DNA of 64,000 nucleotides, from contig CBFFSA010000005.1 of assembly GCA_965644495.1 (NCBI GenBank), positions 496,001 to 560,000 on the forward strand. The letters are read 5' to 3'. A program made the position numbers and the translations under genes. Of the stretch, positions 5,362 to 63,443 are shown in pieces. The DNA comes from Perkinsela sp. CCAP 1560/9. Its lineage: Eukaryota; Protista; Euglenozoa: Kinetoplastea. Numbering within the stretch: position 1 is the stretch's first letter; every line of letters begins with the position of its first letter. The notes under the pieces are model-generated. The model was not told the DNA's origin, did no database searches, and saw nothing but the letters and a program-made list of their open reading frames with translations.

Positions 5362-7525
5362 CAGGGGGGTCACCAATTTCCGGGGGGGTCTAAAATTTGT
5401 GTCGTGTGAGCTTTTGACCTAATTCCTTCGCCATTCAACAGATCTCGAAATTCTAAGCTGTTTTGCGCTATAAAACGTCTCATAAAAAACCAAATGACTA
5501 TATGAGAAATTTTTAAGGAAAAAGTAGGGTCAAAATTCTGCAAATTATTCGAAATAAAGTTTACTACGAAAATTCATTTTCTTTTCTAGGCTCTTCGTTA
5601 AACGCGGTGGTTGTTTTCAACTTAGAAGTCACTCATGCTGCGCGCTTCGCGTTGAAAACTACCGCCGCGTTTAACGAAGAGCCTAAAAAAGAAAATTTAG
5701 CCTGGAAAACAGAAAGATTATAGCCAAAAATAGCCGAATTTCGGGTAAAAATGGGGTGATTTTCGCGTATTTTTGCTGTCAGAGCACTAAATCCGACATT
5801 TGCGCATGGGAAATCACTCGTAGGCATGAATGAAAGCCTACCTAACGTATTGGGTATAGAATGCGACTCCAACCATACCATTCTTTCGACGCAAAAATGC
5901 CCCTTTAGGTCCGAAAAATACTTTTTCACCTTTTTTAGTCAAAAATGGGTCATTTTGAGGGGCGCACCACGGTTCGAAGAAGGGATACCTTGCGAAAACA
6001 ACTGCGGAGAAGGCTAGTGTAGGTCCCAAACTATCAAAATACAATAGGGGAAACGATTTTGGAAAAATATTTTTTTTGCCATTTTTTTCGCCAAGTTGAA
6101 AGTTTTTTCAAATTTTTTTTTCCGAAAAAATCCGAACTTGGCGGACCCGTCCTGCGGATACGCGGGGGGGTCACCCCCGGGTAGGGGGGTGGAAAATGCT
6201 CGCCAAGACCCCGGCTACCCTTTCTGCGGTTTTTTTTCGAAAACTAATTTTTTCGAAAAAATTTGCTCGACCATGCTCGACTCATTTGCTTGACCCCCCC
6301 CTGGACCCCCCCCTGGACCCCCCCCTGGACCCCCCCCCTGGACCCCCCCCTGGACCTCCCCCCTGGACCCCCCCATGGACTCCCCCCATGGACCCCCCAT
6401 TTTTTTCAATTTTTTTTCTCAGTTTTGGACCACCGGAGCCCCCTTTTATATTTTTTTCTTCTATTATATTACTGTGTTCCCCTTTATATTTTCACTGTTT
6501 TTGTTCACTTTTATTTTCAATAATCGAGTGCAGAGCGGTAGTTTTACAACCACCGCAATAATAGTAATTAATGGAATGCTTTTTTTGGGCAGAAATTATT
6601 CCGTTAATTATTATTCCAATGATTTTTACTAAATTTCTACAAAACTTTAAGCGTCAAGGGAAAAGTTCTGCTGATACGTCTTAATCGATTCATCTTTTCG
6701 CGGTAACGTCGCTTTTTTTTGAATTGATGCTACGTTAATTAAAAAAACGTACATTTTAATTACGTTAAGAAGTGCGTCACCGGTATAATCCACTCGTATT
6801 TGAATACTTCACTGTATATTACTGTGTTCCCCTTTATATTTTCACTGTTTTTGTTCACTTTTTTTTCAATAATCGAGTGTAGAGTGGTAGTTTTACAATC
6901 ACATCGGCATTGTTGCAGTCCTCGTGGACAGCTTAAAGTCACCCACCGCATATTTTTGGTAAAGAATTATGAAGAAACAGGGTCCTTTGCTGCCGTTATG
7001 CCCCACAAGCTCAGTATGCCACACAAGCTCAGTATGCCCCACAAATCGGTCAGAATTGCGACCGGCGATCGCATCTGGGATTGAATTGTTCAAAGGAGAA
7101 CAGAGCAAAATATTTTTAAACACTTTGAAGACTCTTCGAACGAAGACTCGTATTAAGATTACATTACAAAACAATGGAGGTGATTGTGGATAGTAAATGA
7201 CATATTTTTCAAAATTTCAAACTTTGCTATTTTCAGCCCCTTCGGCATAGGGACCTACCCCCCTGGATACGGGAAACGTAATATCAGGTGAGACGTATCT
7301 CTGCGAAAGCTCTCGAATGCGGTGCTACTTTCCAAAATTGGACAAGTTATAAAAATTTTGACCCCCCCATATTTTCGTGCCACCCCCTGTATATAATTTT
7401 TAAAATGGGTTTTTATACCGCAAAACAGCTTAGAATTTCGAGATCTGTTGAATGCCGAAGGAATTAGGTCAAAAGCTCACACGACATAAATTTTAGACCC
7501 CCCCAGAAATTGGTGACCCCCCCTG
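5362..7525. mobile_element. Non-autonomous Tc1/mariner-type TIR element containing nested insertions
   Basis: ~105-bp imperfect terminal inverted repeats (cagggggg tcaccaatttc... / ...gaaattggtgacccccctg), flanked by TA on both sides. Confidence 0.8.
5588..6559 (+). repeat. Dispersed ~1 kb repeat family A, copy 1
   Basis: Starts with the ~100-bp palindrome ggctcttcgttaaacgcgg...ccgcgtttaacgaagagcc, has an internal (cccccctgga)n tract and ends in gagcggtagttttacaaccaccgcaat. Near-identical copies occur elsewhere in the window. Confidence 0.9.
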
Positions 7526-59460: not shown

Positions 59461-59784
59461 AAGAGTAGTGCGGGGCTTTATTGCGGGACGGGTTAATTAA
59501 GGGACACCCCCCATCAAGGCCAAAGTTTCCATTAATTCTCCAATTTTTTCCAAGGCTCTAGTATACCTTTTTCTTTCAATTATCTTCTCATATTTATCTC
59601 ATTTTCTTTCACTTATCGTACAAGTACATTTTTATGTGTGCCTGATAACTTGCGCGCTCTGTGACTTGGGCGCTTCACTTGTAGTTCTTTTGACCCATTC
59701 CAAAGGTATGACCCCACCCCCATATTGTCTCTTAAATACCCGTCCCGTAATTAAACCGTCCCGTACACCACGCATTGTAGTTTA

Positions 59785-61989
59785 CCTAGTAGGCATACTA
59801 AACTTTATGTGTCCCAAGGCCACTTATACCTACCCCCCGTCTACACAACAGAAGCGGGAGGCGTACCATTTTCAGAAGACATCGCAACTTTTTCTAGCAA
59901 GAACATACAAAGAAACCTTAATAGAAGGCCAAGGTATCACTTTTAACAAATATAGAGAAGGAACGCTCCGAAGCGCCGCGAAACTATTTTTTGCTTTTTA
60001 GACTAAATTTAGTATAGTACCCCCCCTCTAATAACTAATTGTAAATTACCCTGTTCTCAAGATTTATAAAGAATTAAGATTTATAAAGATTAAGGATGCG
60101 AGCGGGGTTTCATGGTGGTGCTTTAGGCCACCGGAAGTTCTGTCATCAGAAACTGGCTGGTCCAAAGACCAAGTTCATACATGGTTAATAAGAGGGGGTA
60201 TTGAGAGCAACCCCGGCCCACGGGCAGTGTGGTGTTTCCGGTCAACTAAAAACGTCATCATCAACTCTGGTTGGTCCAAAGCGCAAGTACGCACCCAGCT
60301 GATCCAAGGCTGCATTGAAAGCAACCCCGGACCGGGAAAGAAGAGGGGCCGTCCCCCCGGAAGAAAGTTCACACCTTCAGGTTCGTTGGATCTCGGGTCA
60401 CTTCAGATCCAAGCAGACTCGACGATAGAGGAAAACCCAGGCCCGGAGCGCACACGCGGCCGGCCCAAGGAAAGCAAAACAAGAGTTAAAGATGTGTTGA
60501 ATCTGGAAGAAATTCACCCTGGAAGCCCTTGCATATCTGGGGCCTCAGAAGCAGTCCCACGTGGGACCATACTGGAGAAGATGGCTGGAGGAATATTCGA
60601 AGATTGTTCAACCAAAGAGGTTCAATCGGGATCGCATATCTCACAGAAACTGTGTAATACGACAAATCTTCCGCCTCGTCAACTCCACGAAATACAAAGC
60701 CTGCGGGAAACATACACAAAACTGATTACGCGACCTAGTCTGCGTAAATTATATCACCTGCAATTACCGTGCTGGAAGGAATTATGCGGTGGAATATGCA
60801 GAGACTTTGAAATACAACACACAGACACAAAAGCAAAGATGTCGTGGAACCTATTATGCGCAGTGAAGCAGTTCTTATTCCTGCCCGAAAGTCAACTGAC
60901 TCATCGACAACTGGCGTATGAACTACGAAAGCGGATGGCCGAGCAAGAACCAAAATTTACCCCTTCGCTTGCAACCAAAAGTGTGGCAAAATTTAATCCG
61001 GTAGGGTGAGCAGAGGCACTGCTTAAACTTGATGCGATCGGGAAAGCGGCAAAAGCGCTAGAGGCGAAGGAACGACAACCACTATCTACTGAAGAGATCG
61101 CTAAGGCCATAGATCGACTTCACCCAAAGGCCTTTCGGGGTTATAAACATTTGCCGGCAAAATCTATGGACATCGAAAAGCAAACCTTAACTGACAGGGC
61201 TAGAAAGCTCGCCAAAGGATCCGCGCCGGGCCCATCAGGCTGGACACGCGAACTTCTTATACCGCTCCTAGAGGACCAGGATATCGTGGCCTGCGTTACT
61301 TGGATAGCTACAGCAGTGCTGCGAAACTCCCGAGACGCTCAGCTAAGGGACGTCTTAACCAGCTCCACTCTGATCTTGCTGCGCAAGGAGGGCCCTTCCG
61401 TAGAAGGATCCCCAGCCTGCCGACCTATAGCACTGGGGGAAATCTTTCTTAAATTGGCTAGCCAAGTCTCCATGGACAGGGTAGCAGAAGCAACGGGCAG
61501 ACTTTTCCAAGATACACAATTTGGTGTTGGAACAAGAAACGGAGGACCTAAAATAATATTAAGGGCAAGAAACGCGTTTCGTCAAGGCTTAAAAGCTGAG
61601 GTATTAGGGTGTATGGAAAGACGACGTTCTGCCTTGACAAGATATGAAGAGTCGAAGTCAGCAGTGCGTAAAGAAACCAGCGAACTACATGACGTCCATT
61701 CACTTCAGTTGATGGACAAGAGAACGCGCAATTGGACAGAGGCGCGTAGGAATCGGGGTGAGTACTTCATGCGCGACGCAGAATGGCAAACAGCCATTCT
61801 TTTTCCATGTTTTTTTTTCTTTCATATTGTTTTCCATGTCCCCCCCCTTTATTAGGGCCTTTTGCCCAAAATCGGAGTCCTATTAAATAGGGGGGGATAG
61901 TAAATATAAATCCAAAAAAATTATAATCTATATTTATAATTAGTTATTAGAGGGGGGGTATATCGTACCCATTTAGTATGCCTACTAGG
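59785..61989. mobile_element. Outer TIR element containing an inner TIR element (60019-61958)
   Basis: Perfect 18-bp IR cctagtaggcatactaaa / tttagtatgcctactagg; inner IR ccccccctctaataactaatt / aattagttattagaggggggg. Confidence 0.75.
60035..61800 (+). pseudogene. CRE/SLACS-like non-LTR retrotransposon relic with N-terminal tandem 2A-like motifs and AT-hooks
   Basis: One reading frame with a single TGA (61007-61009). AIGKAAKAL..RLHP, GSAPGPSGWTRELL, RPIALGEIFLKL and QFGVG are RT N-terminal motifs; the catalytic core appears deleted. Confidence 0.85.
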
Positions 61990-62114
61990 AATACCATCCT
62001 GGAACATGGTTTAGATAAATTCATAATTATTTGCACAACTTATGTACAACTTATGTAGGTCTTCTTTTTGTCTAGACGCCAATACCACCTTATATCTCTT
62101 ATCCTCATCCATAC

Positions 62115-63443
62115 ATGACTTGTCTCGACGCGTGCAAAGTACTCCTCCCAGAAGCCTTTCCTGAAACCTCAGACCCTATCAAAAACGTCCCCGATGACCC
62201 TCTTCACATTTCGGTCCATCATCTACGCAACAGCATCCAAATTCGTGAAAACTACCTCCGTAGCCAAACCCATAAAACCCCACCTCCCCCCCTCAACCCC
62301 TCCACTCCCCCCACACCACAGCCCCCCCATCCACCCCACACCCCCCTCCCCCCCTCCACCGCTCTCACCCCCTCATCCCATCCCCCCATCCTCCCCATCC
62401 ACCCTCTCGCCCTACGCTCCCGTCACACACGCTCCCCCTCCCCCTCCCCCCCTCCCCGCTGGTCCCTTCGCCGTGTCCTTGCCGCCCACGACGCCTCCGT
62501 GCACGCCCTCACCGTGGACCCCAGCAACACCCTCTTCTTCAGCGCCTCCGCGGACGGCACCGTGAGGGCCTGGGACCTCGCGACCTGCGCGCTCCGGGTC
62601 ACGCTCACGGGCCACCGTGCCGGGGTGCGCGCGTTGGCCTGCAGCGGGTCCCACCCCTACGTGTACAGCGCGGGGGAGGACCGCAGGGTGCGGTGCTGGG
62701 ACCTGGACCACGGGAACGTGGTGGTGCGTCAGCTGGTGGGGAGCCTCGGGGGGGTGTACGCTGTGGGGGAACACCCGGGGGTCGCGGGGGTGGTGGTGAG
62801 TGGGGGGGGTGATGGGGCGGTGCGGGTGTGGGATCTACGCACCTCGAGAGGGGTGTTTACGATGGTGGGGCACTGCGGGGCGGTGAGTGCGGTGGGGTGT
62901 GGGCGGGCGGAGCCGCAGGTGGTGTCGTGTGGGGGGGCGGATGGGACGGTGAGGTTGTGGGATTTGGCCGCGGGGAGGTGTAGGGAGACGTTGACGAGGC
63001 ATAGGAAAGGGGTGAGGTGTGGGGTGATTCACCCGGTGGAGTATGGAATGGTGAGTTGTAGTTCGGATTCGGTGAGGAAGTGGGCGTTTCCGAAGGGGGA
63101 GGCGGTGCAGAAGCATGATCCGCAGTTCCCGCGGGAGGAGGGGACGGGGGAGGGTTCCGGCTTGCGTGGGTCTGCACCGGACTTGATTCATGGTTGTGCG
63201 GTGAACCCTCAGGGTAACATTTTAGTAACGTGTCGTGGTTCCGGTGAGCTATGTTTTCATGACTGGAGCACGCTGCAAGTTTTTCAGCGTTCCATGGAGA
63301 AATCTTATTCTTTGCGTGAGAAATCGGAAGTGCCGTCGAGTGGTCCCAGCATACGTAGTTGCTCGTTTGATTTTAGTGGTTCACGATTATTGACCGCCCT
63401 AGAGGACAAAACGATTCATTGTTGGCAAGAGGTTACCGAATAA
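62115..63443 (+). CDS. PRP46: Spliceosomal WD40 protein PLRG1/PRP46
   Basis: PPRWSLRRVLAAH, VDPSN..F.SASAD, LRVTLTGH, HPYVYSAGEDRRVRCWDL, EPQVVS, VRLWDLAAGR..TLTRHRKGVR, FDFSGSRLLT. Confidence 0.93.
   Translation: MTCLDACKVLLPEAFPETSDPIKNVPDDPLHISVHHLRNSIQIRENYLRSQTHKTPPPPLNPSTPPTPQPPHPPHTPLPPSTALTPSSHPPILPIHPLALRSRHTRSPSPSPPPRWSLRRVLAAHDASVHALTVDPSNTLFFSASADGTVRAWDLATCALRVTLTGHRAGVRALACSGSHPYVYSAGEDRRVRCWDLDHGNVVVRQLVGSLGGVYAVGEHPGVAGVVVSGGGDGAVRVWDLRTSRGVFTMVGHCGAVSAVGCGRAEPQVVSCGGADGTVRLWDLAAGRCRETLTRHRKGVRCGVIHPVEYGMVSCSSDSVRKWAFPKGEAVQKHDPQFPREEGTGEGSGLRGSAPDLIHGCAVNPQGNILVTCRGSGELCFHDWSTLQVFQRSMEKSYSLREKSEVPSSGPSIRSCSFDFSGSRLLTALEDKTIHCWQEVTE

Follow-up and report, generated by a model that had tools for sequence, protein, structure and literature searches.

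A 64,000-nucleotide stretch of the kinetoplastid Perkinsela sp. CCAP 1560/9 (assembly GCA_965644495.1, contig CBFFSA010000005.1, positions 496,001 to 560,000; hereafter the window) contains a fragment of a retrotransposon that lacks long terminal repeats (non-LTR), with three in-frame motifs that resemble the ribosome-skipping 2A (StopGo) peptides. Comparison with other copies of the element makes it probable that the three motifs are genuine 2A units of a family with a restriction-like endonuclease (RLE; R2-like), in which they would separate a front protein from a protein carrying the reverse transcriptase (RT) and the RLE.

The frame with the motifs is open from position 60035, and the listed open reading frame (ORF) begins at a GTG at 60227. 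Translation from 60035 confirmed the three motifs described in the first-pass annotation, together with their positions and spacing. Unit 1 (60116 to 60220, forward strand) comprises 35 amino acids from WCF to NPGP, fits the family logo given below, and ends in the core GIESNPGP (60197 to 60220), with G at position 12. Unit 2 (60221 to 60334, forward strand; 38 amino acids) ends in CIESNPGP (60311 to 60334; position 12, C), and unit 3 (60335 to 60445, forward strand; 37 amino acids) ends in TIEENPGP (60422 to 60445; position 12, T). The motif ends at 60220, 60334, and 60445 are 38 and 37 codons apart. Units 1 and 2 form a diverged direct repeat, as had been proposed (60153 to 60219 versus 60267 to 60333; 72% nucleotide identity), and the nucleotide differences within their shared IESNPGP core are synonymous only. 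Unit 2 is the counterpart of the single unit in sister subfamilies. Where unit 3 lies, a logo-like unit is present in the sister copy L007, and position 12 is V in L005. Two AT-hook-like basic stretches with an RGRP core are seen in the translation, one directly past unit 2 (60335 to 60367, forward strand) and one past unit 3 (60446 to 60469, forward strand), with which the RT-RLE protein would start once the last skip has occurred. The first is kept after the 2A in L006, L011, P0004, and P0068. The Pfam AT_hook profile scored 10.7 bits on the window against a cut-off of 17.4 (E = 0.55), and the RGRP core occurs twice. In the six frames of the window, the only NPGP tetrapeptides are those of the three units. 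Across 200 windows simulated with a Markov-1 model, NPGP occurred at a mean of 1.1 per window and [IV]ExNPGP never.

Conservation and architecture of the 2A-bearing element

Searched in six frames, the Perkinsela genome (110 contigs, 21 Mb) gave 89 matches to the ORF piece of the window. Two of these, on contigs C1 and C4, are near-identical copies with the same three 2A units at the same place, so that the window holds the third copy of a triple-unit subfamily. A DNA pattern for ExNPGP matched 60 genomic sites, compared with 3 for the reversed control, and most of the 60 coincide with matches to this element; the motif-site census drawn from them covers 42 loci. The motifs are thus native to the element and conserved in its other copies (C1, C4, and the subfamilies), as the first-pass annotation would have it, and its suggestion that the peptide is under selection also held. 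The loci in hand give the logo W[CS][FY]xPxExLxxx[ST]GW[ST]xxxVxxxLxRG[GC][IV]ExNPGP, and all synonymous codons are in use at the E, N, P, G, and P of the unit. For the unit plus hook, nonsynonymous divergence (dN) between subfamilies is 0.12 to 0.20 and synonymous divergence (dS) is above 1.5, with synonymous sites saturated; dN/dS is 0.08 to 0.13 for unit 2 of the window against L006, L011, and L012, or about 0.1 across subfamilies. Judged from these rates, purifying selection on the 2A unit is strong across subfamilies.

Position 12 is G, C, T, or V across the family and never D. Li et al. (2026; PMC12846837), who drew on about 10,000 sequences from viruses, widened the 2A core to (D/G/C/N)(V/I)ExNPGP and reported activities of about 90% or more for the sampled position-12 C, T, N, and V variants. 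Units 1 and 2 fit the widened core, and unit 3 corresponds to the rare position-12 T variant, which is published as active. The initial caveat that D is missing from this position is therefore largely removed, G, C, and the rare T and V all being published as active (PMC12846837). The same study describes the upstream hexapeptide as essential and sorts the viral examples into four main groups. The 25- to 30-amino-acid tract upstream of the core is strongly conserved in the Perkinsela family, is absent from unit 3, and is not one of the assayed viral types.

The intact element can be read from the C4 copy, which spans a single 1,563-codon frame that is interrupted by two TGA codons and by local frameshifts. 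It encodes, in order, a front module, the three 2A units, the two basic stretches, an RT domain (RVT_1), and a C-terminal domain. The front module, with a weak C2H2 match and CxxC pairs near its start, takes up about 535 codons ahead of the first 2A motif; the motifs had been placed at the start of the ORF, and this placement was not borne out. In at least nine other loci, the sequence directly upstream of the 2A is a distant match to the front module, and the order front module, 2A, RT recurs in P0003 (a transcript of Apiculatamorpha spiralis), P0004, and P0095 and in the Papus ankaliazontas transcripts P0088 and P0090. This recurrence shows that the front module is part of the element and that the 2As are internal. 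The nearest named homologues are transcripts of two free-living prokinetoplastids, A. spiralis (strain PhF-6) and P. ankaliazontas. Elements carry one, two, or three 2A units. At L038 (G000:C9:160526-182513), at least five tandem copies of a truncated family member, with a period of 5,438 bp, each contain one intact 2A (GVEQNPGP) and one decayed unit (GLEWNRGP). In L032 (2934 to 7328, forward strand; 1,465-amino-acid ORF), about eight tandem Pro/Ser/Gly-rich repeats of about 50 amino acids occupy residues ~130 to 560, between the 2A and the RT.

In full-length relatives, Pfam RVT_1 matched with E values of 1e-16 to 6e-20, and the domain of apurinic/apyrimidinic endonuclease (APE)-type elements (Exo_endo_phos) gave no match. 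Across 14 aligned C-terminal domains, the residues C, C, H, C, RH, D, and D do not vary, and a K is nearly invariant. The AlphaFold model of this domain has a mean predicted local distance difference test (pLDDT) score of 86; its seven best PDB fold matches are all R2 proteins, and the next are PD-(D/E)xK nucleases. R2 proteins were also the best PDB sequence match (5e-11, compared with 3e-6 for LINE-1 ORF2p). The modelled R2-like fold, the CCHC/RH/D/D/K residues, and the lack of an APE domain together identify the element as an RLE-type (R2-like) non-LTR retrotransposon. More distant RLE-type relatives are without NPGP.

The first-pass annotation had preferred RLE over APE type, which stands, and had named the CRE/SLACS clade, a label that is not supported. 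Neither the window nor any of the 42 loci searched contains a spliced-leader (SL) 22-mer that includes the start of the intron, and the copies examined thus do not occupy the fixed insertion site within SL RNA genes that defines CRE. What SL-like sequence there is was found only in relics without the intron, at element 5′ ends. Among 67 homologues, none bears the name CRE, SLACS, or CZAR, and the ESM Atlas look-alikes of the RT-RLE part are generic RVT_1 clusters that carry no clade information. On these comparisons, the CRE/SLACS label is not supported.

AlphaFold modeling of 296 residues around the junction gave about 140 confident residues (pLDDT, 85 to 94) that form two beta-grasp domains, with ubiquitin, linear di-ubiquitin, ISG15, and SUMO as the best PDB matches. 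The confident fold stops at the WCF strand, and the next 25 residues, up to RGG-IESNPGP, are modelled as a low-confidence helix. The duplicated unit of 37 to 38 amino acids consists of one strand plus the whole 2A tail. This is about the length of the ribosome exit tunnel, and each copy therefore brings its own upstream context. A sister RLE element (P0103/P0113, ENA), with 40% RT identity, has a front region without NPGP, in which an MLLE/PABC-like stretch and the Cys and His boxes of a ubiquitin-specific protease (USP) type are recognizable by eye only; it may represent a retrotransposon with its own deubiquitinase-like domain in place of the ubiquitin-like domains and 2A.

The 5′ ends of several copies carry SL relics. 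The kinetoplastid-type SL 3′ half followed by GTA, a search pattern that serves as a lead only, occurs at 135 genomic sites compared with 0 for the control. Part of the SL exon occurs at 454 genomic sites, about 300 of which are intron-less; relics were located by an ungapped scan. The C4 copy has an intron-less relic 34 nt upstream of its first ATG, L039 has one (6629 to 6656, reverse strand) ahead of its 2A-bearing frame, and P0004 has one about 420 nt upstream of its annotated start. In L032, the relic (7380 to 7407) lies directly behind the poly(A) of the preceding element, and relics also follow A runs at L036:8668-8695 and L038:845-872. On the simplest reading, retrotransposition would copy an ordinary trans-spliced mRNA, the translation of which begins at the first AUG. 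L044 contains two further relics (5551 to 5578 and 1575 to 1602). Many of the ~300 intron-less relics lie directly behind A runs and head retroelement copies, a pattern that resembles the retroposed trans-spliced mRNAs seen in dinoflagellates. At some poly(A)|CGATAAAG junctions, there is a hint that insertion is SL-directed, around nucleotide 10 of the relic.

These 5′ ends bear on the earlier proposal that skipping takes the place of a start codon. Within the window, no in-frame ATG precedes the motifs, because the copy is 5′ truncated; those at 60096 and 60112 belong to other frames. The full-length C4 copy has an upstream ATG, preceded by the SL relic, and the front module comes before the 2A in other subfamilies and other species as well; a substitute for the start codon is therefore not needed. 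Skipping would still set the N terminus of the RT protein.

Predicted translation of the element and alternative explanations

In intact members, one ORF of about 1,560 codons encodes a front module, in which a zinc ribbon or C2H2 finger precedes a pair of ubiquitin-like domains, and after it one to three 2A units, an AT-hook-like stretch, the RT, and the CCHC knuckle with the RLE. We hypothesize that this ORF is carried by a trans-spliced mRNA. When a ribosome reaches [GCT]IExNPG, the conserved upstream tail in the exit tunnel would block the peptide bond to the next Pro, the front protein would be released, and translation would resume from that Pro. A single ORF could thus yield an "ORF1-like" protein and an RT-RLE protein that would start at Pro and continue into an AT-hook-like stretch for DNA binding or nuclear targeting. 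Serial units would offer a second and a third chance of separation, and would release two peptides of about 38 amino acids; the yield of RT-RLE would probably fall in relation to that of the front protein.

Several observations weigh against this model. Skipping by these units is a prediction from sequence, and the xLxRG upstream hexapeptide falls outside the four main assayed viral groups; activity therefore cannot be assumed. The upstream context of unit 3 in the window departs from the logo and is without the family's GW...LxRG, and AlphaFold confidence is low over the 2A tail. The window copy itself is, by its structure, non-functional. The element was found in four DNA-type runs from one study and is absent from one possible RNA run, and evidence of expression comes only from relatives in other species.

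An alternative in which the motif is kept for another role, for example to link parts of the structure, to target the protein, or to pause translation, with little or no skipping in the host, appears unlikely. Some retrotransposon 2A-like sequences assayed elsewhere were weak or inactive, and, according to a 2026 preprint, the main effect of many eukaryotic 2A-like peptides is to lower protein abundance. Such a role is at odds with conservation that is strongest exactly on the E, N, P, G, and P that define StopGo, with position-12 residues that all fall within the published active set, and with a near-identical unit in a viral polyprotein. Cleavage by a protease instead of separation at the ribosome is less likely still. 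Ubiquitin fusion proteins are cut after GG by deubiquitinase-type enzymes, and a cut of this kind after RGG, with NPGP incidental, would suit the two beta-grasp domains before the 2A with their matches to ubiquitin and its relatives, the LIRGG of unit 1, and the USP-like Cys/His-box domain of the NPGP-less sister P0103, which was seen by eye and is without profile confirmation. However, many subfamilies have RGC, which a GG-specific hydrolase should refuse, and the part that does not vary is ExNPGP, its last Pro included. In the model, about 25 residues separate the end of the confident fold from RGG, and the polyprotein of an RNA virus has a like unit without ubiquitin-like domains. A ubiquitin-like RGG as a conserved processing site was rejected because many members carry RGC.

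That the three motifs arose by chance, or were joined to the RT by misassembly or rearrangement, is extremely improbable. The window copy is indeed rearranged and bounded by inverted repeats, but the same three units occupy the same place in the two copies on other contigs, the simulated windows were without [IV]ExNPGP (0/200), and contigs from independent runs reproduce the window sequence. The C1 and C4 copies also ruled out the idea that the NPGP region is foreign sequence fused to the RT. Genuine 2A units that separate the front protein from RT-RLE are consequently the explanation that we favor.

A profile of the junction region matched only 36 proteins among 1.84 billion representatives, namely same-family fragments, the two prokinetoplastid transcriptomes, and a tail of proteins that match the 2A part only. 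The closest 2A unit outside retroelements is in P0093 (L043; Logan SRR18186940, 6164 nt), a noda-like RNA virus polyprotein with an RNA-dependent RNA polymerase and tandem 2A units. In P0093, a degenerate unit is followed by one that is identical to unit 1 of the window at 22 of 35 positions (63%; pairwise E = 1e-7) and to the L033 sister unit at 22 of 32 (69%; pairwise E = 2e-8). A downstream ORF of L043 has a weak match to Peptidase_A21 (noda-type capsid). The likeness may reflect shared origin or strong convergence. A more specific scenario, possible but rather doubtful, is that the ...SSETG[W/H]S...LxRGG[VI]ExNPGP unit moved between a noda-like RNA virus and the "ancient" RLE-type elements of early-branching kinetoplastids, was grafted in the latter onto the end of the tandem ubiquitin-like module, and, multiplied to two or three copies, acts as a graded translational valve. 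If so, such a valve would give a single-ORF element plenty of front protein but little RT-RLE, and the division of labor between ORF1 and ORF2 would have been invented independently.

The copy in the window and its surroundings

The window copy is a dead RLE-type non-LTR retrotransposon fragment (60087 to 61797, forward strand), delimited by blastn against the C4 and C1 copies and by contig break points. It is 98.3 to 99.5% identical to those copies over 60087/60089 to 61585 and 61591 to 61797. Relative to C4, it is without about 1.6 kb of the 5′ part and has lost about 836 bp of coding sequence for the RT's catalytic core. The stop codon at 61007 to 61009 (forward strand) interrupts the frame where C4 has Arg, and the other copies have C at 61007. 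The N-terminal RT part (61010 to 61585, forward strand), with the motifs APGPSGWT and RPIA-GE, ends at the deletion junction 61585/61591 and is followed by a post-RT linker segment (61591 to 61797, forward strand), at which the copy stops before the CCHC knuckle and the RLE domain. Everything past this linker is missing from the window copy, and the CCHC knuckle and RLE endonuclease so cut off are carried by the 98%-identical C4 copy. The RT motifs that the first-pass annotation placed downstream of the 2A units are thus present for the N-terminal part of the domain, whereas a full RT is not, its ~836-bp core being deleted. This deletion explains why Pfam RVT_1 gave no score on the window's own pieces and was detected only in undeleted relatives.

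Contigs of other copies from public runs part from the window exactly at 60087, 61585, 61591, and 61797, and one public-run contig bridges the 5′ junction (59900 to 60116) with zero differences. The structure of the window copy is therefore real and not an assembly error. Truncated, internally deleted, and stop-bearing, the copy is, from its sequence, a fossil that cannot be expressed.

The fragment is enclosed by two nested pairs of inverted repeats that resemble terminal inverted repeats and have C7/G7 runs. The inner pair consists of a 29-nt left arm (60018 to 60046) that is 97% complementary to a 29-nt right arm (61932 to 61960), and the outer pair joins 59780 to 59802 with 61972 to 61994. 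A similar C7...G6 palindrome is found at the 5′ break of the C1 copy. These pairs may be elements of the miniature inverted-repeat transposable element type that are tied to the truncations. An Rfam scan of the 64-kb window at gathering thresholds gave no match. About 320 bp 3′ of the fragment is an intact WD40 gene (62115 to 63443, forward strand), PRL1/PLRG1-like by its repeats, in which the first ~110 residues of the protein are proline-rich and of low complexity.

Relation to known 2A sequences and retrotransposons

The biological weight of this window is small because its copy is a dead fragment, and the interest lies in the family. 2A sequences are established in L1Tc, ingi, CR1, L2, Rex1, and Crack and have been tied to APE-type elements (PMC3708506). 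Recent screens list many retroelement-associated 2A-like peptides, one of them noting class A peptides in Perkinsela with the carrier unstated, and a 2025 survey of the trypanosomatid mobilome covers CRE elements and leaves 2A-like sequences unmentioned. Our literature search found no report of a 2A in an RLE-type element and none of a ubiquitin-like module fused to one. The family would thus extend the 2A phenomenon from the APE-type ("young") elements to the older RLE class, and it offers a natural test of whether a 2A lets a single-ORF element make "ORF1-like" and "ORF2-like" proteins. Its natural series of variants, which differ at position 12 (G, C, T, or V) and in the number of units (one, two, or three), and its upstream context, outside those assayed so far, would be useful for mapping what the kinetoplastid ribosome exit tunnel accepts, and the close viral match bears on the origin of retrotransposon 2As.

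Compared with viral StopGo sequences (PMC12846837; bioRxiv 10.64898/2026.09.24.754024), the units share the (G/C)(V/I)ExNPGP core with rare T/V and the arrangement in tandem upstream of one protein. They differ in that the host is a cellular retrotransposon and the xLxRG hexapeptide is outside the four main tested viral groups. The module before the 2A shares with ISG15 and linear di-ubiquitin two tandem beta-grasp domains, here directly before the 2A. The sequence identity is only 9 to 14%, the RGG lies about 25 residues past the confident fold, and many members have RGC.

Among retrotransposons, R2 elements (structures 8gh6, 8ibw, 9dou, and 9nl3) have the same succession of RT, CCHC knuckle, and PD-(D/E)xK-like endonuclease. 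The copies described here are outside ribosomal DNA, have an SL relic as their 5′ end, and include a 2A and ubiquitin-like domains, neither of which is reported for R2 in the literature consulted. CRE1, CRE2, SLACS, and CZAR are likewise RLE-type, single-ORF elements of kinetoplastid hosts with zinc-finger-like motifs; CRE-clade elements occupy a fixed site inside SL RNA genes, whereas the copies examined here do not. The closest functional parallel is with the 2A of L1Tc and ingi (Heras 2006; Odon 2013, PMC3708506), which also have kinetoplastid hosts, carry ExNPGP inside a single long ORF upstream of the enzymatic domains, and have been proposed to make a separate front product from one ORF, as discussed by Odon et al. 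(PMC3708506). Those elements have an APE endonuclease, the canonical D (DIEQNPGP) at position 12, and usually a single 2A close to the N terminus. The family described here has instead an RLE, a position 12 occupied by G, C, T, or V, and one to three tandem units about 535 codons into the ORF, behind a zinc finger and a tandem ubiquitin-like module.

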